Below, piece after piece: positions 8,135 through 55,494 of a stretch of DNA of 64,000 nt. The notes below the pieces were generated by a model. That model saw only the letters and a program-made list of their open reading frames with translations, was not told the origin of the DNA and made no database searches. The stretch lies in sequence record NC_070957.1; one strand, given 5' to 3'. Made by a program: the position numbers and the translations under genes. Each line of letters opens with the position of its first letter. The first letter of the stretch is position 1.

Positions 8135-8569
8135 TTGATAAAATGGTGGAACATAAAAATGTGGTTCGTGATAAGGGAGGTAACAGACCGGTTCGTTTTG
8201 AACCGGGTGGTAAACTGGGCGTCTGATAAGACCCAGAAACACCTTGTCGGTAGCCTTTCCGGTGCCGTTGTGTTCTGTGTGTTCTTACTCATGATTCTGG
8301 CTAACGTTTCCGTTAAAGCCATGACTCTGTGGTATGAACGCCGAGCTCTTCTCGACAACTTGACTCATGTAGAGGCAAGAATGTTAGACGTGCAAGAGAA
8401 CACGAATCTCTTTATCGGCGTACTCCATGAGACGAATGAATCTAAACAGGCTTTGATCGCTGACAACATCAAGTTGAAAAATGACCTTAGCTTGTTGATG
8501 CTTCGTAACAAGGAGTTGGTAAAGAGAAATCGGCTGCTTGAAAAGGAGTTAGATCTCTCCCAGAAATAA
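8135..8569 (+). CDS. Single-TM coiled-coil protein (144 aa)
   Basis: Hydrophobic segment LVGSLSGAVVFCVFLLMILANV followed by a heptad-rich helix; start codon uncertain (TTG 8135 or a later ATG). Confidence 0.7.
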   Translation: MIKWWNIKMWFVIREVTDRFVLNRVVNWASDKTQKHLVGSLSGAVVFCVFLLMILANVSVKAMTLWYERRALLDNLTHVEARMLDVQENTNLFIGVLHETNESKQALIADNIKLKNDLSLLMLRNKELVKRNRLLEKELDLSQK

Positions 8570-46913: not shown

Positions 46914-47279
46914 ATGGGCGGTGTAAACCCTCTGTTCGCAGCACTGTTGGAACTGATCGGCATCGATGTCTATGATACCGACAACTATCAAATCGGTCGC
47001 ACTCGTTCCGGTAACTTCACCGACAACGGTAACAAGATCGAGTACGCAATCCGGACCATCCGTCTGGGTGGTTCACTCTGGATCACTGGTACTCTGGGTG
47101 ATGACGTGGTTGAACTGCGTGTTGTAGAACCTGGCGTAGCCGCGTTCAGCATCGGTCTTCCCAACAAGAACGATGCTGAGACTACCAGCAAGATCGTGTT
47201 CAACATCTCCTTCACCTGCGAAGAAGATCTCCGTACCGCCTGGCGTCGTGTTGAAGGTCTCTTCAGCTACGCCGGTTAA
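46914..47279 (+). CDS. Hypothetical protein (121 aa)
   Basis: AAGGAG RBS. Confidence 0.8.
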   Translation: MGGVNPLFAALLELIGIDVYDTDNYQIGRTRSGNFTDNGNKIEYAIRTIRLGGSLWITGTLGDDVVELRVVEPGVAAFSIGLPNKNDAETTSKIVFNISFTCEEDLRTAWRRVEGLFSYAG

Positions 47280-47286
47280 ATCGACA

Positions 47287-47309
47287 AGGAGGGAAATAAA
47301 TTCCCTCCT
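47287..47309 (+). terminator. Terminator-like hairpin
   Basis: aggagggaa-ataaa-ttccctcct. Confidence 0.65.
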
Positions 47310-47324
47310 ATAATCTTTCACACC

Positions 47325-47340
47325 TATATTACTTAGGTGC
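47325..47340 (+). promoter_or_regulatory. Putative early promoter with an exact TATATTAC core
   Basis: tatattacttaggtgc. Confidence 0.7.
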
Positions 47341-47424
47341 TGGTACGAATAGTAAAGCTTTACGCTTCGTGCTATAACTTGTTAACCAATTGTTTCTTTT
47401 CCACAACTAAGGGAAATCTGAAAA

Positions 47425-47871
47425 ATGTCCAAGAAAACTGAACTGACCTTCGCTGAAATCATGTCCGCCGGTAAAGACTCCCTGGTGAAGGGTGCTGACA
47501 TCCACAACGCGACCCACACCATCAAGTTCAAGGCCGAAGACCTGACCATGCCCAAGGGCGTGACCGCTGAGTCTCTGGACCTCCACATGAACTTCATCAA
47601 CCAGTCTTCCGAGCAAGTCAGCGCCGCTGTCATGGACATCGCCCAGGACCGCTACGAAGACACCAAGCACCTGGCTTGGGATGGTGTTCTGGAAGTGACC
47701 CCCGGTCTGATCCTGACTGGTTTCGCCAACCTCCGTGAAGAAGTCGACGGCGAAGCTGTCTTCGGTTCCATGTCCAGCCTGGTCGACTACAACTACGGCA
47801 CCGAGCTGACCGACTGGATCACCAGCAACCAAGAGCTGATGGCCGAGAAAGCCAAGAAGCTCTTCGAGTAA
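47425..47871 (+). CDS. Hypothetical acidic protein with strong codon bias (148 aa)
   Basis: Stand-alone promoter-gene-terminator unit; codons end almost exclusively in C or G. Confidence 0.85.
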   Translation: MSKKTELTFAEIMSAGKDSLVKGADIHNATHTIKFKAEDLTMPKGVTAESLDLHMNFINQSSEQVSAAVMDIAQDRYEDTKHLAWDGVLEVTPGLILTGFANLREEVDGEAVFGSMSSLVDYNYGTELTDWITSNQELMAEKAKKLFE

Positions 47872-47882
47872 ATGTTCGATCG

Positions 47883-47906
47883 CCCGTTCCTGGAAACAGG
47901 AACGGG
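47883..47906 (+). terminator. Intrinsic terminator with GAAA loop
   Basis: cccgttcctg-gaaa-caggaacggg, then a T-rich tract. Confidence 0.8.
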
Positions 47907-47939
47907 TTACTTCATCTCTTTTTATTTTTGGGTTTTTGT

Positions 47940-48521
47940 ATGAACGATCGTCCCAATGCTAAACAAGTTCTTGCAAAACACACATCTAGAACGTTCCTTT
48001 GTGATGGTGATCGTTTAAGTTGTGTGTCCTTTATTCATCACGTAACCAAACACGTCTGGATAAAGGGTGGTGAGAGCTCAACTTATTTCCACGACGCCAC
48101 CAACTTGAAACTTTTCCTGGGTGGAAAGATCATCAAGCTTCATAGCTGTGATCTGGGTAGTGTTCACTACGGCCTGGTTGATTTCGTTCGTAAACTGGAC
48201 GTGATTATAAAAGCTGTCAGTAACACACTCGACTTCCTTGGTAAGAATCCAAAGTACGGTGACCGTTTCGTAGTGAAGGAATTCCTTAACCCGGTGGATG
48301 GTAACTTGGTGGACATCTATACCAGTTCCATAGCTATTACATCTAGCCCCACTCACGGGTTGACGTTTGAACTCGCGTCATGTGACTTTAAGAGCCGTAT
48401 CACCCTACAACGCAAATCCGGTCCCAAGTTCCTGAGGAAGTTTCTTGATTTCGTCACCAAATGCCGAAATGAAGTTCAGAGTACTCTGGACAAGCACACT
48501 GGTACATTACAGGAGAGTTAA
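47940..48521 (+). CDS. Hypothetical protein, possible shorter member of family A (193 aa)
   Basis: ATG at 47940 with no clear SD; GLVDFVRKLDVIIKAV resembles GLVVVLTRLMNLIKAN of 44430. Confidence 0.65.
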   Translation: MNDRPNAKQVLAKHTSRTFLCDGDRLSCVSFIHHVTKHVWIKGGESSTYFHDATNLKLFLGGKIIKLHSCDLGSVHYGLVDFVRKLDVIIKAVSNTLDFLGKNPKYGDRFVVKEFLNPVDGNLVDIYTSSIAITSSPTHGLTFELASCDFKSRITLQRKSGPKFLRKFLDFVTKCRNEVQSTLDKHTGTLQES

Positions 48522-48523
48522 AA

Positions 48524-49060
48524 ATGCATCCTAATGCAGAACGTGTTATGAACGGGGCTTTTGATGAAATCATTTTCTATGATAAGATCGAAGGTCCGCG
48601 AATTTACATGGATTGGGACTTCGGTCAGAATCCCATCACTGTAAGCGGAAAAGAAAGTGACATGAAGGTCCCTAGGCTTGAGCGGCTGGCAAAGATTCTG
48701 GAGTGGGAGGATAAAACCTCTTGGGTCCTGACATTTACTAATGGTGAATGGCCGAGCTGTTCCATCGAGTCTGTTGACCGTCGTGTCACCAAAGATCCTG
48801 ACTGGGAACTTCCCTTTGACACTGTGGAAGAATGTCTTCTGCACATCCACGATCACATGGGTGAGAAAGGGCTGGTCTATCGTTCCAAGCAAGAAATGCC
48901 GCTCGATTTGACCAGTGTTGTCAAGCCGTGGGATCTCAGTAAGGAAACCTACACCAACGAGGAAGTTCGCATTCTCATGGAAATGATGAAGGCGGAATTC
49001 GTTGAGACAACCAACCAACTTTTCGATCGTATGCTGGGTCGTCTGGCAATAAAGGAATAA
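48524..49060 (+). CDS. Hypothetical protein (178 aa)
   Basis: AGGAG RBS. Confidence 0.8.
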   Translation: MHPNAERVMNGAFDEIIFYDKIEGPRIYMDWDFGQNPITVSGKESDMKVPRLERLAKILEWEDKTSWVLTFTNGEWPSCSIESVDRRVTKDPDWELPFDTVEECLLHIHDHMGEKGLVYRSKQEMPLDLTSVVKPWDLSKETYTNEEVRILMEMMKAEFVETTNQLFDRMLGRLAIKE

Positions 49061-49071
49061 GGAGTATAAAA

Positions 49072-49620
49072 ATGAAAAAGCTGGGTGTGTTTATTGTACT
49101 ACTCTTTGCATCGATGTTTGCCATGGCCGGTGGTACTACGAAGGCCAATCTGGACCTCGGTAGCATGGGTTGGGTAGTCGACAAACGTACCGAAGACGGC
49201 AAAGCGTACATGATTCGTAATAAAGGGAATAACGGTGGAGTCATCCGACTCGGCTGTAATGTCCCTGGCGGGGATGTTTCTGTCAAGTACATCTATCGGG
49301 GACTCAATAAAGACTTCTTCATTATTGAGCTTCTCACTGATGCCAGACTGGATTCCTATCCCTATACGGCCATGTATGGAGTTAAGTCATTGAACCAAGC
49401 AGCGATGTACAAGCAGTTCGCTATGACCGATGCTGGTTTCATGATGACTCGTTTTGCCGAAGGTGCGGCTGAGCGATTCTTTAAGAGTCGCAAAGATCGT
49501 GAGGTTTACGGACTCCCCCGTCCCATTGGTACGGAGCTGTTCGTTGGTCACGAGCAAGTAGCTGATTATATCAATGATGTTAAAGCCACTTGCGGTTTCA
49601 CTGAGGAACCTCTTCACTGA
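49072..49620 (+). CDS. Secreted/periplasmic two-cysteine protein, family B (182 aa)
   Basis: Sec signal MKKLGVFIVLLFASMFAMA; only Cys62 and Cys174. Confidence 0.85.
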   Translation: MKKLGVFIVLLFASMFAMAGGTTKANLDLGSMGWVVDKRTEDGKAYMIRNKGNNGGVIRLGCNVPGGDVSVKYIYRGLNKDFFIIELLTDARLDSYPYTAMYGVKSLNQAAMYKQFAMTDAGFMMTRFAEGAAERFFKSRKDREVYGLPRPIGTELFVGHEQVADYINDVKATCGFTEEPLH

Positions 49621-49653
49621 GGAGCCTTTTCTATTAACTTAGGAAACCGGTAA

Positions 49654-50148
49654 ATGTCCTGTGTAAATATTGAAAGACTTGAAAAGGTCGGATACGTCAT
49701 AGAACGTAGGTCGGATAGACTGGACCAATTCATTTTAAGATCAAGGGAGCCGGGTGATCGCCCTGGGGTATTTGCGAGTGATGGTATCGAAGACAATCCT
49801 CGCTGGACTTCTGATGAACGTATGTCATTCACAGTGGCATGTGACGTTTCTGCAAAGAAGTACATCATCTCACTGTTCATCTTTGGACGGTCGGATGAAC
49901 TACCCCCTACGTATTTCCTGTTGGACGTTGAACCAACATCTCTTTGGCTGGCTGTTGAAACAGTCTTAGAGACTCAACCTCTGACTCCGGTTGACGAAAC
50001 GATTGAAGCTCGAGACGACATCATTTCTGACGGAAAGGTTTATACTACCGACCAGGTGGTCACCCTGATAAAGTTAGTCCGCGGAGATCTCAACTCTCCT
50101 GAGGGTGATAAGCACATCGCGATGCTGCTCAAGAGTGTGCAGCCATAA
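49654..50148 (+). CDS. Hypothetical protein (164 aa)
   Basis: AGGA RBS; C-terminal motif shared with 48524. Confidence 0.75.
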   Translation: MSCVNIERLEKVGYVIERRSDRLDQFILRSREPGDRPGVFASDGIEDNPRWTSDERMSFTVACDVSAKKYIISLFIFGRSDELPPTYFLLDVEPTSLWLAVETVLETQPLTPVDETIEARDDIISDGKVYTTDQVVTLIKLVRGDLNSPEGDKHIAMLLKSVQP

Positions 50149-50156
50149 TAAATAAG

Positions 50157-50188
50157 CTCCTAGGAACGCTTGTGGGCGTTCCTAGGAG
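50157..50188 (+). terminator. Terminator hairpin
   Basis: ctcctaggaacgc-ttgtgg-gcgttcctaggag, perfect 13-bp stem. Confidence 0.75.
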
Positions 50189-50270
50189 TATATGTGTGTC
50201 ATTTAATACAGAGGTCGTAACTATTCGTTATAGAGCGTTACAGAGCTCTAGATGCATAATTTTTCAGCTA

Positions 50271-50286
50271 TACATTATTATAGTGT
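50271..50286 (+). promoter_or_regulatory. Putative early promoter
   Basis: tacattattatagtgt. Confidence 0.65.
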
Positions 50287-50319
50287 AATGACAATCATTA
50301 TTCTACTAAGGAGCACGAC

Positions 50320-50925
50320 ATGAAAACCATTATTGCTTTTGTATTGTTTATGTTCGCTGTCGGTGTAGAAGCCGCCAGCTACGATATCAAAGAGGACCCG
50401 GTCTTCAATCTGGAAACTGCGGTCAACAATGATGTCAGTGTTAAAAAGATCTCTGGTAAAACTCACATCAAGATCCAGGGTGTGAGTGCCGAGGGTAAAC
50501 ACAACCAGTGGGAGTTCATCTGCACTCCCTTCAAACCTGAACTTGTCATCAAGAACAACTCAGTTAACGAGGATGGTCAGATGACGAAGGAAGGAACTGG
50601 TTTCGCCATTCAGTTCTATATGGATGAGGAAGAAGTGGGACGTCCAATTGGCGAATGGGACAACGCGGACATTTATGTTTGGGATGATGGTCGTCAAGCT
50701 CTCGACCTCGCTCTTAACCGTTTACTTCCTATCGGCCAAGGCTGGATCGTATTTACAGTGTACGACATCGGGATGGGTAATGACAGGATTCCGGTTTCTT
50801 ACAGTCACAAGTACCCGGTCGGTGTTGCACAAGACATCGTGCGGAAACTGGTTAAAGCGGACGCTCTGGTTGATTGCAACTCTGCATTGATTCAAACTGG
50901 CGCTACCATCAAGTTCACTAACTAA
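50320..50925 (+). CDS. Secreted/periplasmic two-cysteine protein, family B (201 aa)
   Basis: AAGGAG RBS; Sec signal MKTIIAFVLFMFAVGVEA; only Cys68 and Cys186. Confidence 0.85.
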   Translation: MKTIIAFVLFMFAVGVEAASYDIKEDPVFNLETAVNNDVSVKKISGKTHIKIQGVSAEGKHNQWEFICTPFKPELVIKNNSVNEDGQMTKEGTGFAIQFYMDEEEVGRPIGEWDNADIYVWDDGRQALDLALNRLLPIGQGWIVFTVYDIGMGNDRIPVSYSHKYPVGVAQDIVRKLVKADALVDCNSALIQTGATIKFTN

Positions 50926-50936
50926 GGAAAAATACC

Positions 50937-51557
50937 ATGCGTTTTATTATTGCTTTTCTTACACTGGTTCTCTCCACTGGCTCCTATGCTTTCAGCTTCG
51001 GTAAGAAGGCTGTTCCGGTAGAGGAGAACAGCTTCGAAACATCTTGGGCTCGTGTCCTCACTCTCAAAGATCAAATCTCTATGGGATGGACTGCTCGGGA
51101 CATGAGTGACCGGGAATTCGATATTACCATGATGTGCGACAGCATCCGCTCGACCATCTGGAATTACAAGTTCCCAGGCCAACCTGGTGTAAAGGTAGAC
51201 GGCCTTGCCATGCTGATGGTCCGTGACGTCGGAAACGATTTGTCGAAGATCGACCTGGAGACCGAAAGCCGGAACTACATGGTGATCTTTGATAGTAACT
51301 ATGCAATCGACGGTTCTGCGAATCTGGAAGTGCTGGTGAAAGACTCCAAGCGCATCGATGTGATTCCTGAACACATCAAGTTCCTGTGGGTTGGTTATAA
51401 AGCTAACCATACTGGTACCTGGATTGTTGCATCTGGACCCAAGATGTCCGCTGAAGGTATGTTCGGTCGTATGCAGTCTTACGCTGACTTCCCTCGTACC
51501 CAATTGGACACTTGCAGTCGTTCCATGGAGGAGCCTTCTTATAAGGTAGCCAACTAA
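50937..51557 (+). CDS. Secreted/periplasmic two-cysteine protein, family B (206 aa)
   Basis: AAGGA RBS; Sec signal MRFIIAFLTLVLSTGSYA; only Cys67 and Cys193. Confidence 0.85.
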   Translation: MRFIIAFLTLVLSTGSYAFSFGKKAVPVEENSFETSWARVLTLKDQISMGWTARDMSDREFDITMMCDSIRSTIWNYKFPGQPGVKVDGLAMLMVRDVGNDLSKIDLETESRNYMVIFDSNYAIDGSANLEVLVKDSKRIDVIPEHIKFLWVGYKANHTGTWIVASGPKMSAEGMFGRMQSYADFPRTQLDTCSRSMEEPSYKVAN

Positions 51558-51558
51558 G

Positions 51559-51590
51559 AAAAGCCCCGTGTTCACGGACACGGGGCTTTT
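51559..51590 (+). terminator. Hairpin (terminator or processing site) inside the envelope-protein operon
   Basis: aaaagccccgtgt...acacggggctttt, immediately followed by the AAGGAG RBS of the next gene. Confidence 0.7.
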
Positions 51591-51602
51591 AAGGAGTTAT
51601 CC

Positions 51603-51737
51603 ATGAATAACAAAACTGTTGTATTTCTTTTAATAATAGGACTGGCCATAATCTGGTTAGGTAGTGAACACGTTGAACTGGAAGAAGCTGTCGATAACCT
51701 CACAGAAGTTATCGGTCAGTGTGTCAATCAAGAGTAA
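51603..51737 (+). CDS. Small single-TM membrane peptide (44 aa; not in the ORF track)
   Basis: AAGGAG RBS; MNNKTVVFLLIIGLAIIWLG followed by an acidic helix. Confidence 0.65.
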   Translation: MNNKTVVFLLIIGLAIIWLGSEHVELEEAVDNLTEVIGQCVNQE

Positions 51738-51767
51738 TCTCTCGTCTTTCTTAATGGAGTTCTGTAA

Positions 51768-52466
51768 ATGTTTAAGTCACTTGCTCGTCAAACTGCTGTT
51801 ATCGCTTTATTTGTTGGTGTTCTATTTGGCGGCATTGGTTACAAGTTAGCCGACTACCGTACTCACGAAGTTAAGAGTGATGTCATTGTCACTCATGAAG
51901 TAATGCCTGAGTGGAAACTTTTACAGCTCCGGGAGATCTCTGAAGAAAGCAGGGGTGAAGCTATCGCTCCCGTCGATCAGCAAGAACTCATTATGAACTA
52001 TGCTGAGGTCCAAGACCATGCTGCGTTCTACGAGTTCATCGCTAAGGGTTCCGATGACCGAGTGGTTCTTTACTGTGACGCTCACACCAACTCTGTCAAC
52101 ATCGGTTACCAGTTTGGTTTGGTAGATGAGGAACTGTCCGAACGGCTTGATGGATTCTCTATCAAGGTTCTCCGTCCAGGCAGTACTGGTTACTTTATCT
52201 TTGATGAAATGCGCCCTGCGCTCTATGACACTCATCAAGAAAGCACCTATCTCAATGCAGGAATGAAAGCGTTGGCTGATGAAGATCCCGAAGCACTGGT
52301 GGTCTTTACTCTTCGCTATAGCGGTACGGAAGAGGAGTCTCTGGTAGCAGGTGTATCGCCAGCCTTTAAGGTTCGGGATGTACTTGCAGCCTGGAATGCA
52401 GTTCCTACATCAGCGTGTGAGTTCGTCAACCTCACTGATTACCCTTCTTCGTTTGAACAGAAATAA
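51768..52466 (+). CDS. Membrane-anchored/exported two-cysteine protein, family B (232 aa)
   Basis: GGAG RBS; N-terminal hydrophobic anchor AVIALFVGVLFGGIGY; only Cys103 and Cys217. Confidence 0.8.
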   Translation: MFKSLARQTAVIALFVGVLFGGIGYKLADYRTHEVKSDVIVTHEVMPEWKLLQLREISEESRGEAIAPVDQQELIMNYAEVQDHAAFYEFIAKGSDDRVVLYCDAHTNSVNIGYQFGLVDEELSERLDGFSIKVLRPGSTGYFIFDEMRPALYDTHQESTYLNAGMKALADEDPEALVVFTLRYSGTEEESLVAGVSPAFKVRDVLAAWNAVPTSACEFVNLTDYPSSFEQK

Positions 52467-52470
52467 AAAT

Positions 52471-52500
52471 AACTCTCTAGCCTTAACGGGCTAGAGAGTT
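52471..52500 (+). terminator. Terminator hairpin
   Basis: aactctctagcc-ttaacg-ggctagagagtt, perfect 12-bp stem. Confidence 0.8.
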
Positions 52501-52543
52501 CTTCATTCTATATTTGTTTTTGACATACATTCCATCTCAGATA

Positions 52544-52559
52544 GATATTACCTAAGTGA
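52544..52559 (+). promoter_or_regulatory. Putative early promoter
   Basis: gatattacctaagtga. Confidence 0.65.
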
Positions 52560-52595
52560 TAGATAACCAATATCTTTTATTCACACTTAGGAGAG

Positions 52596-52784
52596 ATGAC
52601 AATGTTCGCTATCAAAAACATTACCGTTCTGTTCACCGTTGTTATCTCCCTGGTGGGGATTAACCATTTGACAGTTAACAACCACATGAAACTCCATGAT
52701 GGTGTCCGACCTGTTGTTCAGTACGATCACGCAAATCGTATACTGGATGTTAGCAATCTCGAAGTAAAACCAAATACCTTTTAA
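52596..52784 (+). CDS. Small protein with an N-terminal hydrophobic segment (60-62 aa)
   Basis: AGGAG RBS (start 52596 or 52602); ITVLFTVVISLVGI. Confidence 0.65.
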   Translation: MTMFAIKNITVLFTVVISLVGINHLTVNNHMKLHDGVRPVVQYDHANRILDVSNLEVKPNTF

Positions 52785-52794
52785 GGGGAAATAA

Positions 52795-53517
52795 ATGAAA
52801 AACCAACCTAATGGCGAACTCAGCGTTCAGGTAGATTACATCCGTAAATTCATGTTTCTGTTTCAGGAGCATGATGTACCTATGAGCTTGATCCGTGCTT
52901 GTGTTAAGTCCATTGCACAGAACGATCTGGCTCACAACCTTGGACATGTTCATGGTGTTTGTGAACTGGCCAGTCAGATGGCCGAGTGCCGCGTCAATAA
53001 GGGTGACCAATTGAAGGTTATGCTGGCAGCACTGTTCCACGATCTGGGTTGTCGTTATAACCGGGATGATCATCATCTCATCAGCTACGGCCTCACCTAT
53101 CAGTATCTGGCTGAGTACTGGCCTGAGCGTTTCACTCCTGATGAAATCAAGGAGATCGCTGTGGCTGTGCTGGAACACCGTAGTTCCAGTAAGGGTAAAC
53201 CGACCAGTCTGATTTCTGAGATCGTTTCGGTAGCGGACAGTGGCAAACCTAACATCGAGATCTATATCAAGCGGGCGTTGCAATTCCGCATCTCTCGTGG
53301 TGATCTCGAAAACAAGGGTAAAGATGTACTGTTCGATGAAGTATATCATCACCTCCTGGAGAAGTTCGAGAGCAATACCGGGTACCACTGGAATAGCTAC
53401 CCTGATATAGGACTCATGCACTTCAAAGAAGAATGGGATGAATTCCAGGTTCTTCTTCACCCGACTCTTGTAAGTCACGCTATGAGAACCATAAGCGAGA
53501 TTTACAACAAACTGTAA
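52795..53517 (+). CDS. HD-domain metal-dependent phosphohydrolase (240 aa)
   Basis: AHNLGH...AALFHDLG...AVLEH...VSVADS metal-ligand pattern. Confidence 0.88.
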   Translation: MKNQPNGELSVQVDYIRKFMFLFQEHDVPMSLIRACVKSIAQNDLAHNLGHVHGVCELASQMAECRVNKGDQLKVMLAALFHDLGCRYNRDDHHLISYGLTYQYLAEYWPERFTPDEIKEIAVAVLEHRSSSKGKPTSLISEIVSVADSGKPNIEIYIKRALQFRISRGDLENKGKDVLFDEVYHHLLEKFESNTGYHWNSYPDIGLMHFKEEWDEFQVLLHPTLVSHAMRTISEIYNKL

Positions 53518-53565
53518 TAGATGGAGGGAGCCTATTCTCCCTCCCCATTAAAAGGAAACAAGCGA

Positions 53566-53859
53566 ATGAACAACCAACTCAAAAGCACCTGCGTTAACCT
53601 GACCAACAACTTCTTCTTCTACAAGAATGAAAACGGCGTGGTCTATTTTTCCAGTTATCAACTTTCACTGGATGGGTTCCTGGAAATCACCAGTGATGAA
53701 CTTTATGCGGTCCTCGATGGACTCGATCACTTCTATCTGAAGGCCGAGATAATCGGTGAAGTAGAAGTGCACGAACTGGTCACCGAGACCACCAAGGTTC
53801 ACGCCACAATGTCTGGTCACAAACATGTGATCGCCGATACTTTCTACTCCGTCTGGTAA
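53566..53859 (+). CDS. Hypothetical protein (97 aa)
   Basis: Start reassigned to 53566 (AAGGA RBS). The upstream 53523-53544 forms an 8-bp hairpin, ggagggag/ctccctcc. Confidence 0.7.
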   Translation: MNNQLKSTCVNLTNNFFFYKNENGVVYFSSYQLSLDGFLEITSDELYAVLDGLDHFYLKAEIIGEVEVHELVTETTKVHATMSGHKHVIADTFYSVW

Positions 53860-53868
53860 GGTTGTGAT

Positions 53869-54183
53869 ATGTCCAATATGCAAGTACAAATCCTTCGTCC
53901 CTTTGACATCGTTCGCTGCTGCAAACATGGAGACACGTCAATCGGGATGGTGACCGAGGTCACTGATGGCAATCGTTGTAGTATCGATTGGTTCGTTAAT
54001 GACGCCAACATGCCCAATGCTTGGATTAACGCTATGCAGCTTACCATACTGGGTAACTGCATGAACGCTATTGCAAGAGCAATGGCACATCCCATGGGGT
54101 CAGGTGCTAAACATCCGGACAGTATGTTCCCGATGACTGTAGACGGTCAAACCACTCCCTACCATCACAAATCAGGACGATAG
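53869..54183 (+). CDS. Hypothetical protein, possible SH3-like beta-barrel (104 aa)
   Basis: PFDIVR..GDTSIGMVTEV..CSIDW..AW pattern is SH3/KOW-like (inference). Confidence 0.6.
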   Translation: MSNMQVQILRPFDIVRCCKHGDTSIGMVTEVTDGNRCSIDWFVNDANMPNAWINAMQLTILGNCMNAIARAMAHPMGSGAKHPDSMFPMTVDGQTTPYHHKSGR

Positions 54184-54186
54184 AAA

Positions 54187-54519
54187 ATGTATCATCTACT
54201 CGCACAACAAAACAATCCTCTCAACGCAAGAATGTCGGCCGCTATCGAAATGGTCCAGCTGGCCAATGAACGTTACGGTGTACGACCCAGTTTAGTACTC
54301 GTGTTGAAATATCTGGACGACCCGCAGCGAGTACCAGAGACAATCGACATCAACGCCCAGATCCTGGATCATCACACCCACTTCAAGTTGTTACCCAAAG
54401 AACGAAGGGTGGTTACTCACGCCCATCTGGGAATGGATTTCAGTGCTGAACGGATTGGACGTAAAGCTCTGGAGGAAGATTATGGTTATCATACCCACGG
54501 TAAGCTTGAAACTGATTAA
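54187..54519 (+). CDS. Hypothetical protein (110 aa)
   Basis: Operon spacing; ends before a convergent terminator. Confidence 0.65.
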   Translation: MYHLLAQQNNPLNARMSAAIEMVQLANERYGVRPSLVLVLKYLDDPQRVPETIDINAQILDHHTHFKLLPKERRVVTHAHLGMDFSAERIGRKALEEDYGYHTHGKLETD

Positions 54520-54536
54520 CAGTTGAGAACAGCAAA

Positions 54537-54567
54537 AGAGCTAGTCACCCAATGGGTGACTAGCTCT
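54537..54567. terminator. Bidirectional terminator hairpin
   Basis: agagctagtcaccc-aat-gggtgactagctct, perfect 14-bp stem between convergent genes. Confidence 0.85.
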
Positions 54568-54591
54568 AGTTATATTACTGTTTTTTTTTGG

Positions 54592-55494
54592 TTAACCGAC
54601 GTAGTCAGGACGTACGATGGTGCGCTTCTCAGCGTTCATCATTTCCTGAATACCGTTATCCTTGAGACCTTGCAGGGTCGCAGTCTGGGTCTTGAAGCCG
54701 GCAGGAGCATCACGACCAGCAGGGTTGTAAAGCGGCATACGTTGGAGCATGGCCTTTGCAATCTGCTTGGCAGCGTAGGTGTCGAATTCGATCAGACCGG
54801 TGAACTCGGTGTTAACTTCACGAACACGGCCAGCAGTCTGGTCGATATCGAAGGACATCTCGATGGAAGGGGTTTCCTTCGGCATCTGTGCCAACACCAG
54901 GGCGGCGTGACGGATTTCCTTGAAGTTACGAGTCGGTTCGAAGTAGATCGAAGCCATGGAGATTTCATCCAGCAGCAGATCACCCGGATAGTTCAGAGTG
55001 ATTGCTTTGGGGTGCAGGATGGTCGGATCCATGATCAGGTATTCGGACCAAACTTGCATCAGCTTGGAGAAGGACTCGCCTTCCGGATCCAGGGCGTTGT
55101 GACTGATCGCACCGAACTGGCGTTGTGCACCGGTCGGGAAGGACAGCTGGGCGCCACCGGCCCAAGTGATGTCGTGGTAGTCGAGGGAAGTACGAGCGGT
55201 CAGACCGCTCCAGTTACGACTACGGGTTTCCATGTATGCACGCAGCAGACCGTGGAACTGACGACCGCCAGGGATGTGGTCGAAACCAGCCGGGGTTGAC
55301 AGTACAACACAGTACGGACGCTGGGACACATACGGTTGCTCTTCGACATAGCGGTAGTTGTTCGGCGCGTAGCCGTACTGACCACCATGTGCGGCGTTGA
55401 TCACGGGAGCGTTGCCTACGTTAAAGGCGCGATGGAATTCGCTGTTCCCGGGAAGCAAGGTCTTATTATCACGGTGCGGATAATTAGTTGCCAT
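54592..55494 (-). CDS. Tail tube protein (phiKZ gp30-like, 300 aa)
   Basis: Directly downstream of the sheath gene; strong codon bias; size and motifs (PYCVVLSTPAGF) fit phiKZ-like tube proteins. Confidence 0.75.
   Translation of the reverse strand: MATNYPHRDNKTLLPGNSEFHRAFNVGNAPVINAAHGGQYGYAPNNYRYVEEQPYVSQRPYCVVLSTPAGFDHIPGGRQFHGLLRAYMETRSRNWSGLTARTSLDYHDITWAGGAQLSFPTGAQRQFGAISHNALDPEGESFSKLMQVWSEYLIMDPTILHPKAITLNYPGDLLLDEISMASIYFEPTRNFKEIRHAALVLAQMPKETPSIEMSFDIDQTAGRVREVNTEFTGLIEFDTYAAKQIAKAMLQRMPLYNPAGRDAPAGFKTQTATLQGLKDNGIQEMMNAEKRTIVRPDYVG

Follow-up and report, generated by a model that had tools for sequence, protein, structure and literature searches.

We analysed a 64,000-nucleotide stretch of DNA from sequence record NC_070957.1, hereafter called the window, and within it a 3.7-kb block of seven consecutive genes (gp023 to gp017, positions 49072 to 52784, all on the + strand) that mostly encode exported or membrane proteins. 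This 64-kb window is the end of the record of Aeromonas phage D3 (NC_070957, Ludhianavirus, 262,372 bp), to which positions 47000-55000 are 100% identical. D3 is a phiKZ-like jumbo phage: genes for multisubunit RNA polymerases, for a head protease of the phiKZ type and for the sheath and tube of the tail are found in the window, and chimallin, PhuZ and two multisubunit RNA polymerases have been reported for its sister phage AerS_266 (PMC10673249). Every gene of the block is annotated as encoding a 'hypothetical protein'. Only seven of the 60 annotated genes of the window encode a protein with an N-terminal hydrophobic segment and six of these are found among the seven genes of the block, a clustering that is far above chance.

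The four larger exported proteins, which we call A to D, are encoded at 49072..49620 (A, gp023, 182 amino acids), 50320..50925 (B, gp021, 201 amino acids), 50937..51557 (C, gp020, 206 amino acids) and 51768..52466 (D, gp018, 232 amino acids). A, B and C start with a hydrophobic segment followed by a small-x-small cleavage-type site, and D has a hydrophobic N-terminus without such a site, which fits a signal anchor. The original prediction, made by a model from the letters of this DNA, had read Sec signals on A, B and C and a signal anchor on D, and our heuristic calls, based on hydrophobic segments, small-x-small sites and lipoboxes, agree with it. Its coordinates, its protein lengths and its count of two cysteines per protein (Cys62/Cys174 in A, Cys68/Cys186 in B, Cys67/Cys193 in C and Cys103/Cys217 in D, thus spaced by 112, 118, 126 and 114 residues) were all exact when recomputed by script. 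The very low mutual identity that it described was also recovered, since pairwise BLAST comparisons of the four D3 proteins returned no similarity except in their signal peptides. The two small membrane peptides that it placed in the same block are equally real: p (gp019, 51603..51737, 44 amino acids), located directly upstream of D, is a single-transmembrane (TM) peptide, and q (gp017, 52596..52784, 62 amino acids) is hydrophobic at its N-terminus. Each contains one hydrophobic segment and each has metagenomic relatives at 37-57% identity (37% for the m14 homologue of p and 40-57% for m14_9430 and m16_5065, the homologues of q).

By tblastn, orthologues of A that are 22-35% identical to it were identified in the jumbo phages of six host genera: the Aeromonas phages PS1, PS2, CF8, ZPAH34, AerS_266, AhC3_1 and others, and then Klebsiella phage N1M2, Kosakonia phage Kc263, Serratia phages Sureiya and Yubaba, Shewanella phage SXP01 and Pseudomonas phage OBP. 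Orthologues of D were found further in Edwardsiella phage pEt-SU and Pantoea phage Survivor, and no match was found at BLAST sensitivity in Phikzvirus or Elvirus. The gene order was the same in every locus that we compared: a gp025-like gene encoding a protein of ~200 amino acids, then A, B, extra members if any, D and a gene for an HD-domain phosphohydrolase, after which the genes for the tail tube and sheath usually come on the opposite strand. In D3, this hydrolase is gp016 (52795..53517, + strand; Pfam HD, E 3e-8), the invariant neighbour downstream of the module according to synteny. The module lies between the gp025-like gene and the HD gene in PS1, N1M2, OBP, CF8, AerS_266, Kc263, Sureiya, SXP01, AhC3_1 and pEt-SU, as well as in four IMG/VR genomes, located by using the HD hydrolase as an anchor, and in four metagenome contigs; gene order was unchanged in metagenome contigs encoding A proteins that are 47-70% identical to that of D3. 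Judging by this synteny, the D3 block is the local version of a module found in every OBP-like jumbo phage that we examined, across eight host genera. The number of exported members per genome varies from three (PS1, N1M2, Kc263) to four (D3, Sureiya) or five (OBP and the four IMG/VR genomes), with orthologues of A, B and D kept in all relatives. Identities between D3 and its relatives amount to 70-89% for the tail tube protein and 47-70% for the HD hydrolase versus 22-31% for B and 23-42% for D. B and D are thus, on the evidence of these comparisons, evolving much faster than their neighbours, and extra paralogues appear to come and go between lineages. In Kc263, the A and B orthologues were labelled 'adhesin' and 'putative exopolygalacturonase' by the depositors, and an 83-residue protein encoded ~3.5 kb upstream of the module (L008:1396-1647) carries the depositor label 'outer membrane lipoprotein RcsF'; Pfam gives no support to any of these labels.

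The cysteine pair turned out to be the most constant feature of the exported proteins. We gathered 73 module proteins that have an N-terminal hydrophobic segment and a length of 140 amino acids or more, and counted cysteines after a crude removal of the signal: exactly two were left in 73/73, with a spacing of 99-129 residues. According to our heuristics, an export signal (signal peptidase I site, lipobox or anchor) is present in all four D3 proteins and in the 73 collected members. Both cysteines are invariant columns within each of the subfamilies A, B, C, D, E and F, including the 18 orthologues of A. Among the 16 sequences of B (median identity 20%), they represent two of only five invariant columns, and among the 19 sequences of D (median identity 23%), two of only four. 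Non-exported neighbours contain 0 to 8 cysteines, and having exactly two is not rare by itself, as the non-exported X (the remaining gene of the block) and gp024 proteins have two as well. Since these cysteines are invariant in proteins predicted to reside in an oxidising compartment, and since no third cysteine is present, a single intramolecular disulfide per protein is the natural reading of this pattern.

We then considered whether these proteins are related to each other. For B and D, several pairs of orthologues matched at a BLAST E-value of 1e-4 with their cysteines in register, and profile comparisons by hhalign scored 98.5-99% (E down to 7e-18; 99% in the comparison of B with D), so that, at the level of their sequences, we are certain that B and D are paralogues. 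The F subfamily, made of proteins of 197 amino acids from the IMG/VR genomes, joins them (96% for B versus F and 92-94% for D versus F), and CF8_6379 reaches 65-89%. A search with the combined B and D alignment returned only three proteins.

The case of C is less direct. Relatives of C are confined to the Ludhianavirus lineage, and its comparison with D alone gave only 2-5% in hhalign. A global comparison of C with a profile of 39 B, D and F sequences gave 48.6% (E 2.7e-5) and aligned both cysteine columns; the profile score was 28.0, when 40 column shuffles gave 3.0±1.5 and the alignment read in reverse gave 3.7. When a structure model of C was searched against BFVD by Foldseek, the best matches after itself were a 235-residue entry (E 1.1e-3, probability 1.00), a 197-residue entry (0.99) and a 201-residue entry (0.72), with TM-scores of only 0.35-0.41. 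The 235- and 201-residue entries (G9I9N9 and A0A5C2IFY9) are presumably OBP_306, a member of the D family, and the B protein of D3/D9, respectively, an assignment made from matching lengths. In addition, C occupies the slot of B in m14 and L025, in which B is missing; a duplicate of B that has diverged would be expected to sit there. Taking these sequence and model comparisons together, C is a probable homologue of B and D.

The link of A to the other members is looser. Its hhalign values ranged from 2 to 30% overall and from 9 to 30% against D or B/D, and Foldseek gave only a match at probability 0.21 to a B-sized protein of pEt-SU. Its local score was 24.8 compared with 11.3±1.9 for the null, with A scoring 7-9 standard deviations over shuffled and reversed controls, and the ten best cross-matches of a hidden Markov model (HMM) of A were all other module proteins, ranked above 314 other open reading frames. 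We consider it plausible that A is a member of the family, and the link of the E subfamily to the others is weak. These comparisons of profiles, and of folds for A and C, supported the proposed kinship for B and D (98.5-99% in hhalign) and made it probable for C (Foldseek probability 1.00), but A stayed low in both. The diversified family of disulfide-clamped periplasmic proteins that the original prediction had imagined is therefore upheld for B and D, probably extends to C and is found clade-wide, but it includes A by a weak link only.

AlphaFold2 (AF2) models were obtained from shallow alignments for A (pLDDT 72.7, pTM 0.65) and C (pLDDT 63, pTM 0.60). Both models display a common order of elements: three strands, the first cysteine at or just after the third, then more strands and one or two short helices, and finally a C-terminal helix followed by the second cysteine, which falls in a low-confidence tail in C. 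Both models are beta-rich, and the domain common to the module would be mostly beta-stranded and comprise about 150-190 residues. The first cysteine had been proposed to end a strand-turn-strand and, in both models, it does close a beta-hairpin; the second one had been placed after a C-terminal amphipathic helix, which is seen in the model of A, but not securely in that of C, in which this cysteine belongs to the low-confidence tail.

Library searches returned nothing that would name this domain. Pfam gave no informative match for A to D and no MliC, Ivy or Pli match at E<=1 (searched with the D3 proteins, 25 B/D and 13 A members); PDB sequences gave no match at E<=1 with profiles of A, B+D and C; PADLOC gave none at E<=1; PHROGs gave only weak matches (E 0.015-0.09) to families of unknown function; and neither the single proteins nor the family alignments had a meaningful match in NCBIfam. 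Foldseek searches of the A model against PDB returned nothing below E 0.19 and no Spackle entry, although PDB contains solved structures of Spackle. Two kinds of apparent hits were discarded: a ProX match of A in NCBIfam scored 14.9 bits against a cutoff of 215 and is noise, and the Calx-beta, NHL and other repeat proteins (P0016-P0018) that HMMER retrieved with C reflect additive repeat noise and are not relatives. Five of the top 25 PDB matches of the A model (query pLDDT 72.7) were lipocalins, at probabilities of 0.01-0.03 and TM-scores of 0.10-0.16. In its order of elements, the model of A recalls lipocalin/calycin-type barrels whose C-terminal helix is tethered by a disulfide: antiparallel strands come first and a helix ends the chain, with cysteines after the third strand and after the helix. 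These structural matches are not significant and come with no sequence match, and we treat this resemblance as a lead only. Altogether, this family is without Pfam, NCBIfam, PADLOC, PDB or annotated PHROG counterpart and is undescribed.

The N-termini also differ between members in a way that suggests distinct locations in the cell envelope. A, B and C have the appearance of soluble periplasmic proteins whose signal is cleaved off. Outside Aeromonas phages, 10 orthologues of D carry a lipobox, with an aspartate at position +2 in six of them, an asparagine in two, a glutamate in one and a lysine in one; in Aeromonas phages, D carries instead an uncleaved N-terminal TM segment. An aspartate at +2 is the classical Lol-avoidance signal, causing retention in the inner membrane, in Enterobacterales. 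With either a lipobox followed mostly by aspartate or a TM anchor, D would be tethered to the inner membrane, and these features suggest that it is held at the periplasmic face of this membrane, where it would act. The peptide q seems to switch between lipid and TM anchoring as D does: an orthologue in a metagenomic relative (L014:9430-9615) has a lipobox-like site, and q of D3 has no cysteine. Another observation concerns residues 19-25 of B (50374-50394), directly after the predicted cleavage site, which are near-identical in 11 of the 16 B orthologues from different host genera when the rest of the protein is ~20% identical; this conserved free N-terminus may be functional.

To describe how the module may be transcribed, we used a 14-base AT-rich degenerate pattern that was derived from seven intergenic D3 sites and that occurs nine times in the window when 0.24 occurrences are expected (about 40-fold). 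Seven of these nine sites are intergenic and upstream of + strand genes (2645, 4224, 42045, 44362, 47326, 50272 and 52545), the two others being intragenic (34408 and 51121), and none of them precedes a structural gene within the window. A scan for sigma-70 promoters found no excess (10 found versus 11.0 expected). The early-type promoter motifs that had been noticed at ~50271 and ~52544 belong to this 14-base pattern. In D3, a first pattern site (47326..47339, + strand), in the 145-nucleotide intergenic region before 47425, heads gp026-gp025-gp024-A-X; a second (50272..50285, + strand) heads B-C-p-D, the pattern being also found upstream of B or A in relatives; and a third (52545..52558, + strand) heads a q-HD operon, with an equivalent before HD in N1M2, Kc263, Sureiya and m12. 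Terminator-like hairpins on the + strand end the A-X unit (50156..50189, -28.2 kcal/mol, z -7.8) and the B-D unit (52471..52500, -20.9 kcal/mol, z -7.0). The pattern is located directly upstream of A in PS1, N1M2, OBP, CF8, Sureiya, SXP01 and the four IMG/VR genomes, and upstream of B in AhC3_1, m12 and m16. The module would therefore form one operon under this promoter in most relatives and three predicted transcription units in D3, in which A is split from the rest by the insertion of X with its own terminator. X (gp022, 49654..50148, + strand, 164 amino acids) has no hydrophobic N-terminus, is not exported and is unrelated to the exported family. It is lineage-specific, being absent between A and B in PS1, N1M2, OBP and other genera, and its last ~35 residues are common to proteins of 286-292 amino acids encoded at the same position in the metagenomic m12 and m16. 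The early envelope island, presented as one block by the original prediction, thus holds in that six of seven consecutive genes encode exported or membrane proteins, but it is divided into three transcription units, with A in an upstream operon and X as an unrelated insertion.

In jumbo phages encoding their own RNA polymerases, the only conserved promoter motif that can be found by bioinformatics is the early promoter of the virion RNA polymerase, which is AT-rich and centred near -10 (PMC7598289), and the early promoter of phiKZ has a T-rich tract upstream (PMC8244752). According to these criteria, the D3 sites share the architecture of early virion RNA polymerase promoters, with an AT-rich element and an upstream T-rich tract. 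Because of this resemblance to the promoter class of studied relatives, the module is probably expressed early, soon after infection. A literature search found no transcriptome or proteome for this clade. A further hairpin (51559..51590, + strand, 14-bp stem, -26.3 kcal/mol, z -7.5), a candidate internal terminator or attenuator, lies between C and p. It is GC-rich, comes with a U-run and sits in a 45-nucleotide gap, the corresponding gap in m14 being only 20 nucleotides long; by terminating or attenuating transcription, it may lead to the production of B and C in excess over p and D.

Putting these elements together, we propose the following model. The three to five genes of each module would descend from one ancestral, mostly beta-stranded periplasmic domain, and their products, each with a single invariant pair of cysteines, would be exported via the Sec or the lipoprotein pathway. 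The RNA polymerase injected with the virion would read the AT-rich promoters, so that these proteins would be made within the first minutes of infection and would accumulate in the periplasm, with D anchored at the periplasmic face of the inner membrane and A, B and lineage extras such as C remaining soluble. They would then act as binding proteins on envelope components and, by guarding or re-setting the envelope, would protect the infected cell from additional injections or from wall-degrading enzymes arriving from outside. We are confident about the anatomy of the module as described in this model. Taken as a whole, the model is our best explanation and its chances of being right in all its parts fall somewhat short of even. 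Its last step, superinfection exclusion or envelope guarding, is put forward tentatively. Binding scaffolds would be favoured over enzymes, since no set of polar residues is conserved across subfamilies and the invariant columns are mainly cysteine, glycine, proline and aromatic residues, thus leaving no conserved residues that look catalytic. The fast divergence of these proteins and the turnover of paralogues fit proteins that face a changing partner. We rank exclusion or guarding first because most early phage proteins known so far from the periplasm or inner membrane shield the cell, once infected, against attack by further phages. A more specific version, in which one tethered and two to four soluble paralogues of a single disulfide-clamped fold, not seen before, would assemble into a periplasmic takeover complex that closes the envelope to injection or neutralises wall-degrading enzymes, appears rather doubtful.

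Several observations weigh against this model. The retention of A, B and D in all relatives looks more like that of a core infection function than like that of an accessory exclusion system. The expression and the location of every member are deduced from sequence, the promoter class is assigned by analogy only, and the AF2 models reach no more than a moderate quality (pLDDT 63 and 73). The link between A and the other members is weak, both in hhalign and in Foldseek (probability 0.21). The rule on aspartate at +2 was established for Enterobacterales, which do not cover all the hosts considered here, and four of the D lipoproteins carry asparagine, glutamate or lysine instead. Finally, D may be uncoupled from B and C by the strong hairpin that separates C from p. 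The exclusion, receptor-blocking or Spackle-like proteins evoked by the original prediction were matched neither in sequence nor in fold, in searches that covered Pfam, PHROGs, PDB sequences, PADLOC and, by Foldseek with the A model, PDB structures.

The alternative that survives best is a role in the phage's own cycle: in a periplasmic complex, the tethered D together with A and B, the soluble members, would stabilise or remodel the envelope once the tail has punctured it, or would set the timing of lysis as a sensor or regulator of the lysis-inhibition type. That orthologues of A, B and D persist in all genomes of the clade, in eight host genera, speaks for such a role, which fits almost as well as guarding, and the gross topology of D is that of a membrane-tethered periplasmic domain. 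Cells infected by phiKZ at high multiplicity lyse more slowly, from which the authors of that study suggested a lysis-inhibition system with unknown components (PMC12894885), an observation that also counts in favour of an own-cycle role. However, the promoter type suggests early rather than late expression, the module is unlike the lysis cassette of phiKZ (PMC12894885) and has no endolysin or holin neighbour, D cannot serve as a holin where it is a lipoprotein, and fast divergence with paralogue turnover fits an arms race better than housekeeping. We regard this role as unlikely, if still worth keeping in mind.

Less probable again is that these proteins inhibit peptidoglycan hydrolases, either host autolysins or the GH19 and transglycosylase domains of incoming tails, as Spackle or PliC/MliC would. 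PliC and MliC pair a soluble with a lipid-tethered form of a small periplasmic domain that is rich in beta-strands, and they act as binders rather than enzymes; this resemblance to the soluble and tethered members of the module is a lead only. The module domain is likewise predicted to be beta-rich and disulfide-stabilised without conserved catalytic residues, and among the virion proteins of D3 are large ones that degrade the cell wall, gp042 ('chitinase') and gp039 (peptidase/transglycosylase). PliC and MliC are, however, of bacterial origin and about half the size of the module proteins, with no match to them in Pfam (MliC/Ivy/Pli at E<=1), NCBIfam or PDB sequences and nothing significant among the Foldseek matches of A in PDB.

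We find it very unlikely that A, and perhaps C, are unrelated to the others and merely share a two-cysteine pattern common among periplasmic proteins: the empty pairwise BLAST comparisons in D3, the low hhalign values of A (2-30%) and of C versus D alone (2-5%), the TM-scores of 0.35-0.41 for C and the two cysteines of X and gp024 would agree with it, but the spacing held to 99-129 residues in 73/73 proteins, with the first cysteine after the third strand and the second near the C-terminus, the profile scores at 7-16 standard deviations over column-shuffled and reversed controls, the replacement of B by C in two lineages and the restriction of the best HMM cross-matches of A to module proteins all argue for kinship.

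Two further possibilities were rejected. Virion proteins are excluded in principle, since capsids and tails are assembled in the cytoplasm and proteins exported by Sec/Lol would not be parts of them. Lysis genes, and spanins in particular, were also ruled out. The lysis cassette of phiKZ consists of an i-spanin/o-spanin pair, a holin, a regulator and an endolysin, with the i-spanin being an alpha-helical coiled coil with an N-terminal TM domain and the o-spanin a small outer-membrane lipoprotein (PMC12894885). As gp141 and gp141.1 of phiKZ are membrane-anchored and lipoprotein periplasmic proteins of a chimallivirus (PMC12894885), they do resemble the module proteins at first sight. But spanins are encoded as an adjacent or overlapping pair by a holin and an endolysin, whereas the module is adjoined by no lysis genes, having hypothetical genes and the HD hydrolase as neighbours, and is preceded by a presumed early promoter; in addition, the modelled domains of A and C are beta-rich, B and D are homologues of each other, and the lipoprotein forms of D, with 217-245 amino acids, mostly carry an aspartate at +2.

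Coming back to exclusion or envelope guarding, the closest parallels are found in other phages. Spackle (Sp, gp61.3) and Imm of T4 are early phage proteins that act on the envelope of the infected cell, at the periplasm or inner membrane. The module proteins are, by comparison, two to three times larger, beta-rich, multi-paralogous and found clade-wide with an invariant cysteine pair; neither Spackle nor Imm was matched in PDB sequences, Foldseek searches of PDB or PHROGs, and exclusion is a proposal in the present case. Llp of T5 and Cor are early phage lipoproteins of the envelope, as D orthologues outside Aeromonas phages, with their lipobox, may be. These are, however, small outer-membrane lipoproteins, whereas D has 217-245 amino acids, mostly carries an aspartate at +2 and has a TM anchor in Aeromonas phages, and no family match links them to D.

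Studies of nucleus-forming jumbo phages have mainly looked at the cytoplasm, in which the early phage infection (EPI) vesicle, the shell made of chimallin and the spindle made of PhuZ are found, and a recent review of these phages names no periplasmic or exclusion protein. That a whole clade keeps three to five exported proteins under what is probably its earliest class of promoters points to an unexplored envelope stage of infection. The family evolves fast on a fixed, presumably disulfide-bonded scaffold, and the switch of D between lipoprotein and TM-anchored forms, together with the turnover of paralogues between lineages, provides a natural experiment. If the module did form a takeover complex, chimalliviruses would for the first time have a known exclusion system at the level of the envelope, and the turnover of its paralogues would track competing phages; exclusion or neutralisation of lysins would also have consequences for co-infection, for speciation and for the way in which phage cocktails are designed. 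Should the module serve the entry of its own phage or the timing of lysis instead, it would fill a gap in the biology of chimalliviruses.

A few observations concern the surroundings of the module. Upstream of A, gp026 (47425-47871, corresponding to phrog_13587) and gp025 (47940-48521) encode non-exported proteins, are conserved in this position in every relative and belong to the operon of A in D3, so that they may be functionally tied to the module. More widely in the window, the 14-base pattern, which is present across the genera of the clade, marks presumed early operons; there are at least seven of them and they contain hypothetical genes only. A perfect 14-bp hairpin at 54537-54567, between the convergent gp013 and tail tube genes, is terminator-like on both strands. 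Finally, the only gene outside the block that encodes an N-terminal hydrophobic segment in the window is gp058 (8159-8569, 136 amino acids, segment at about residues 29-47), which might encode a membrane protein, for instance a holin candidate.

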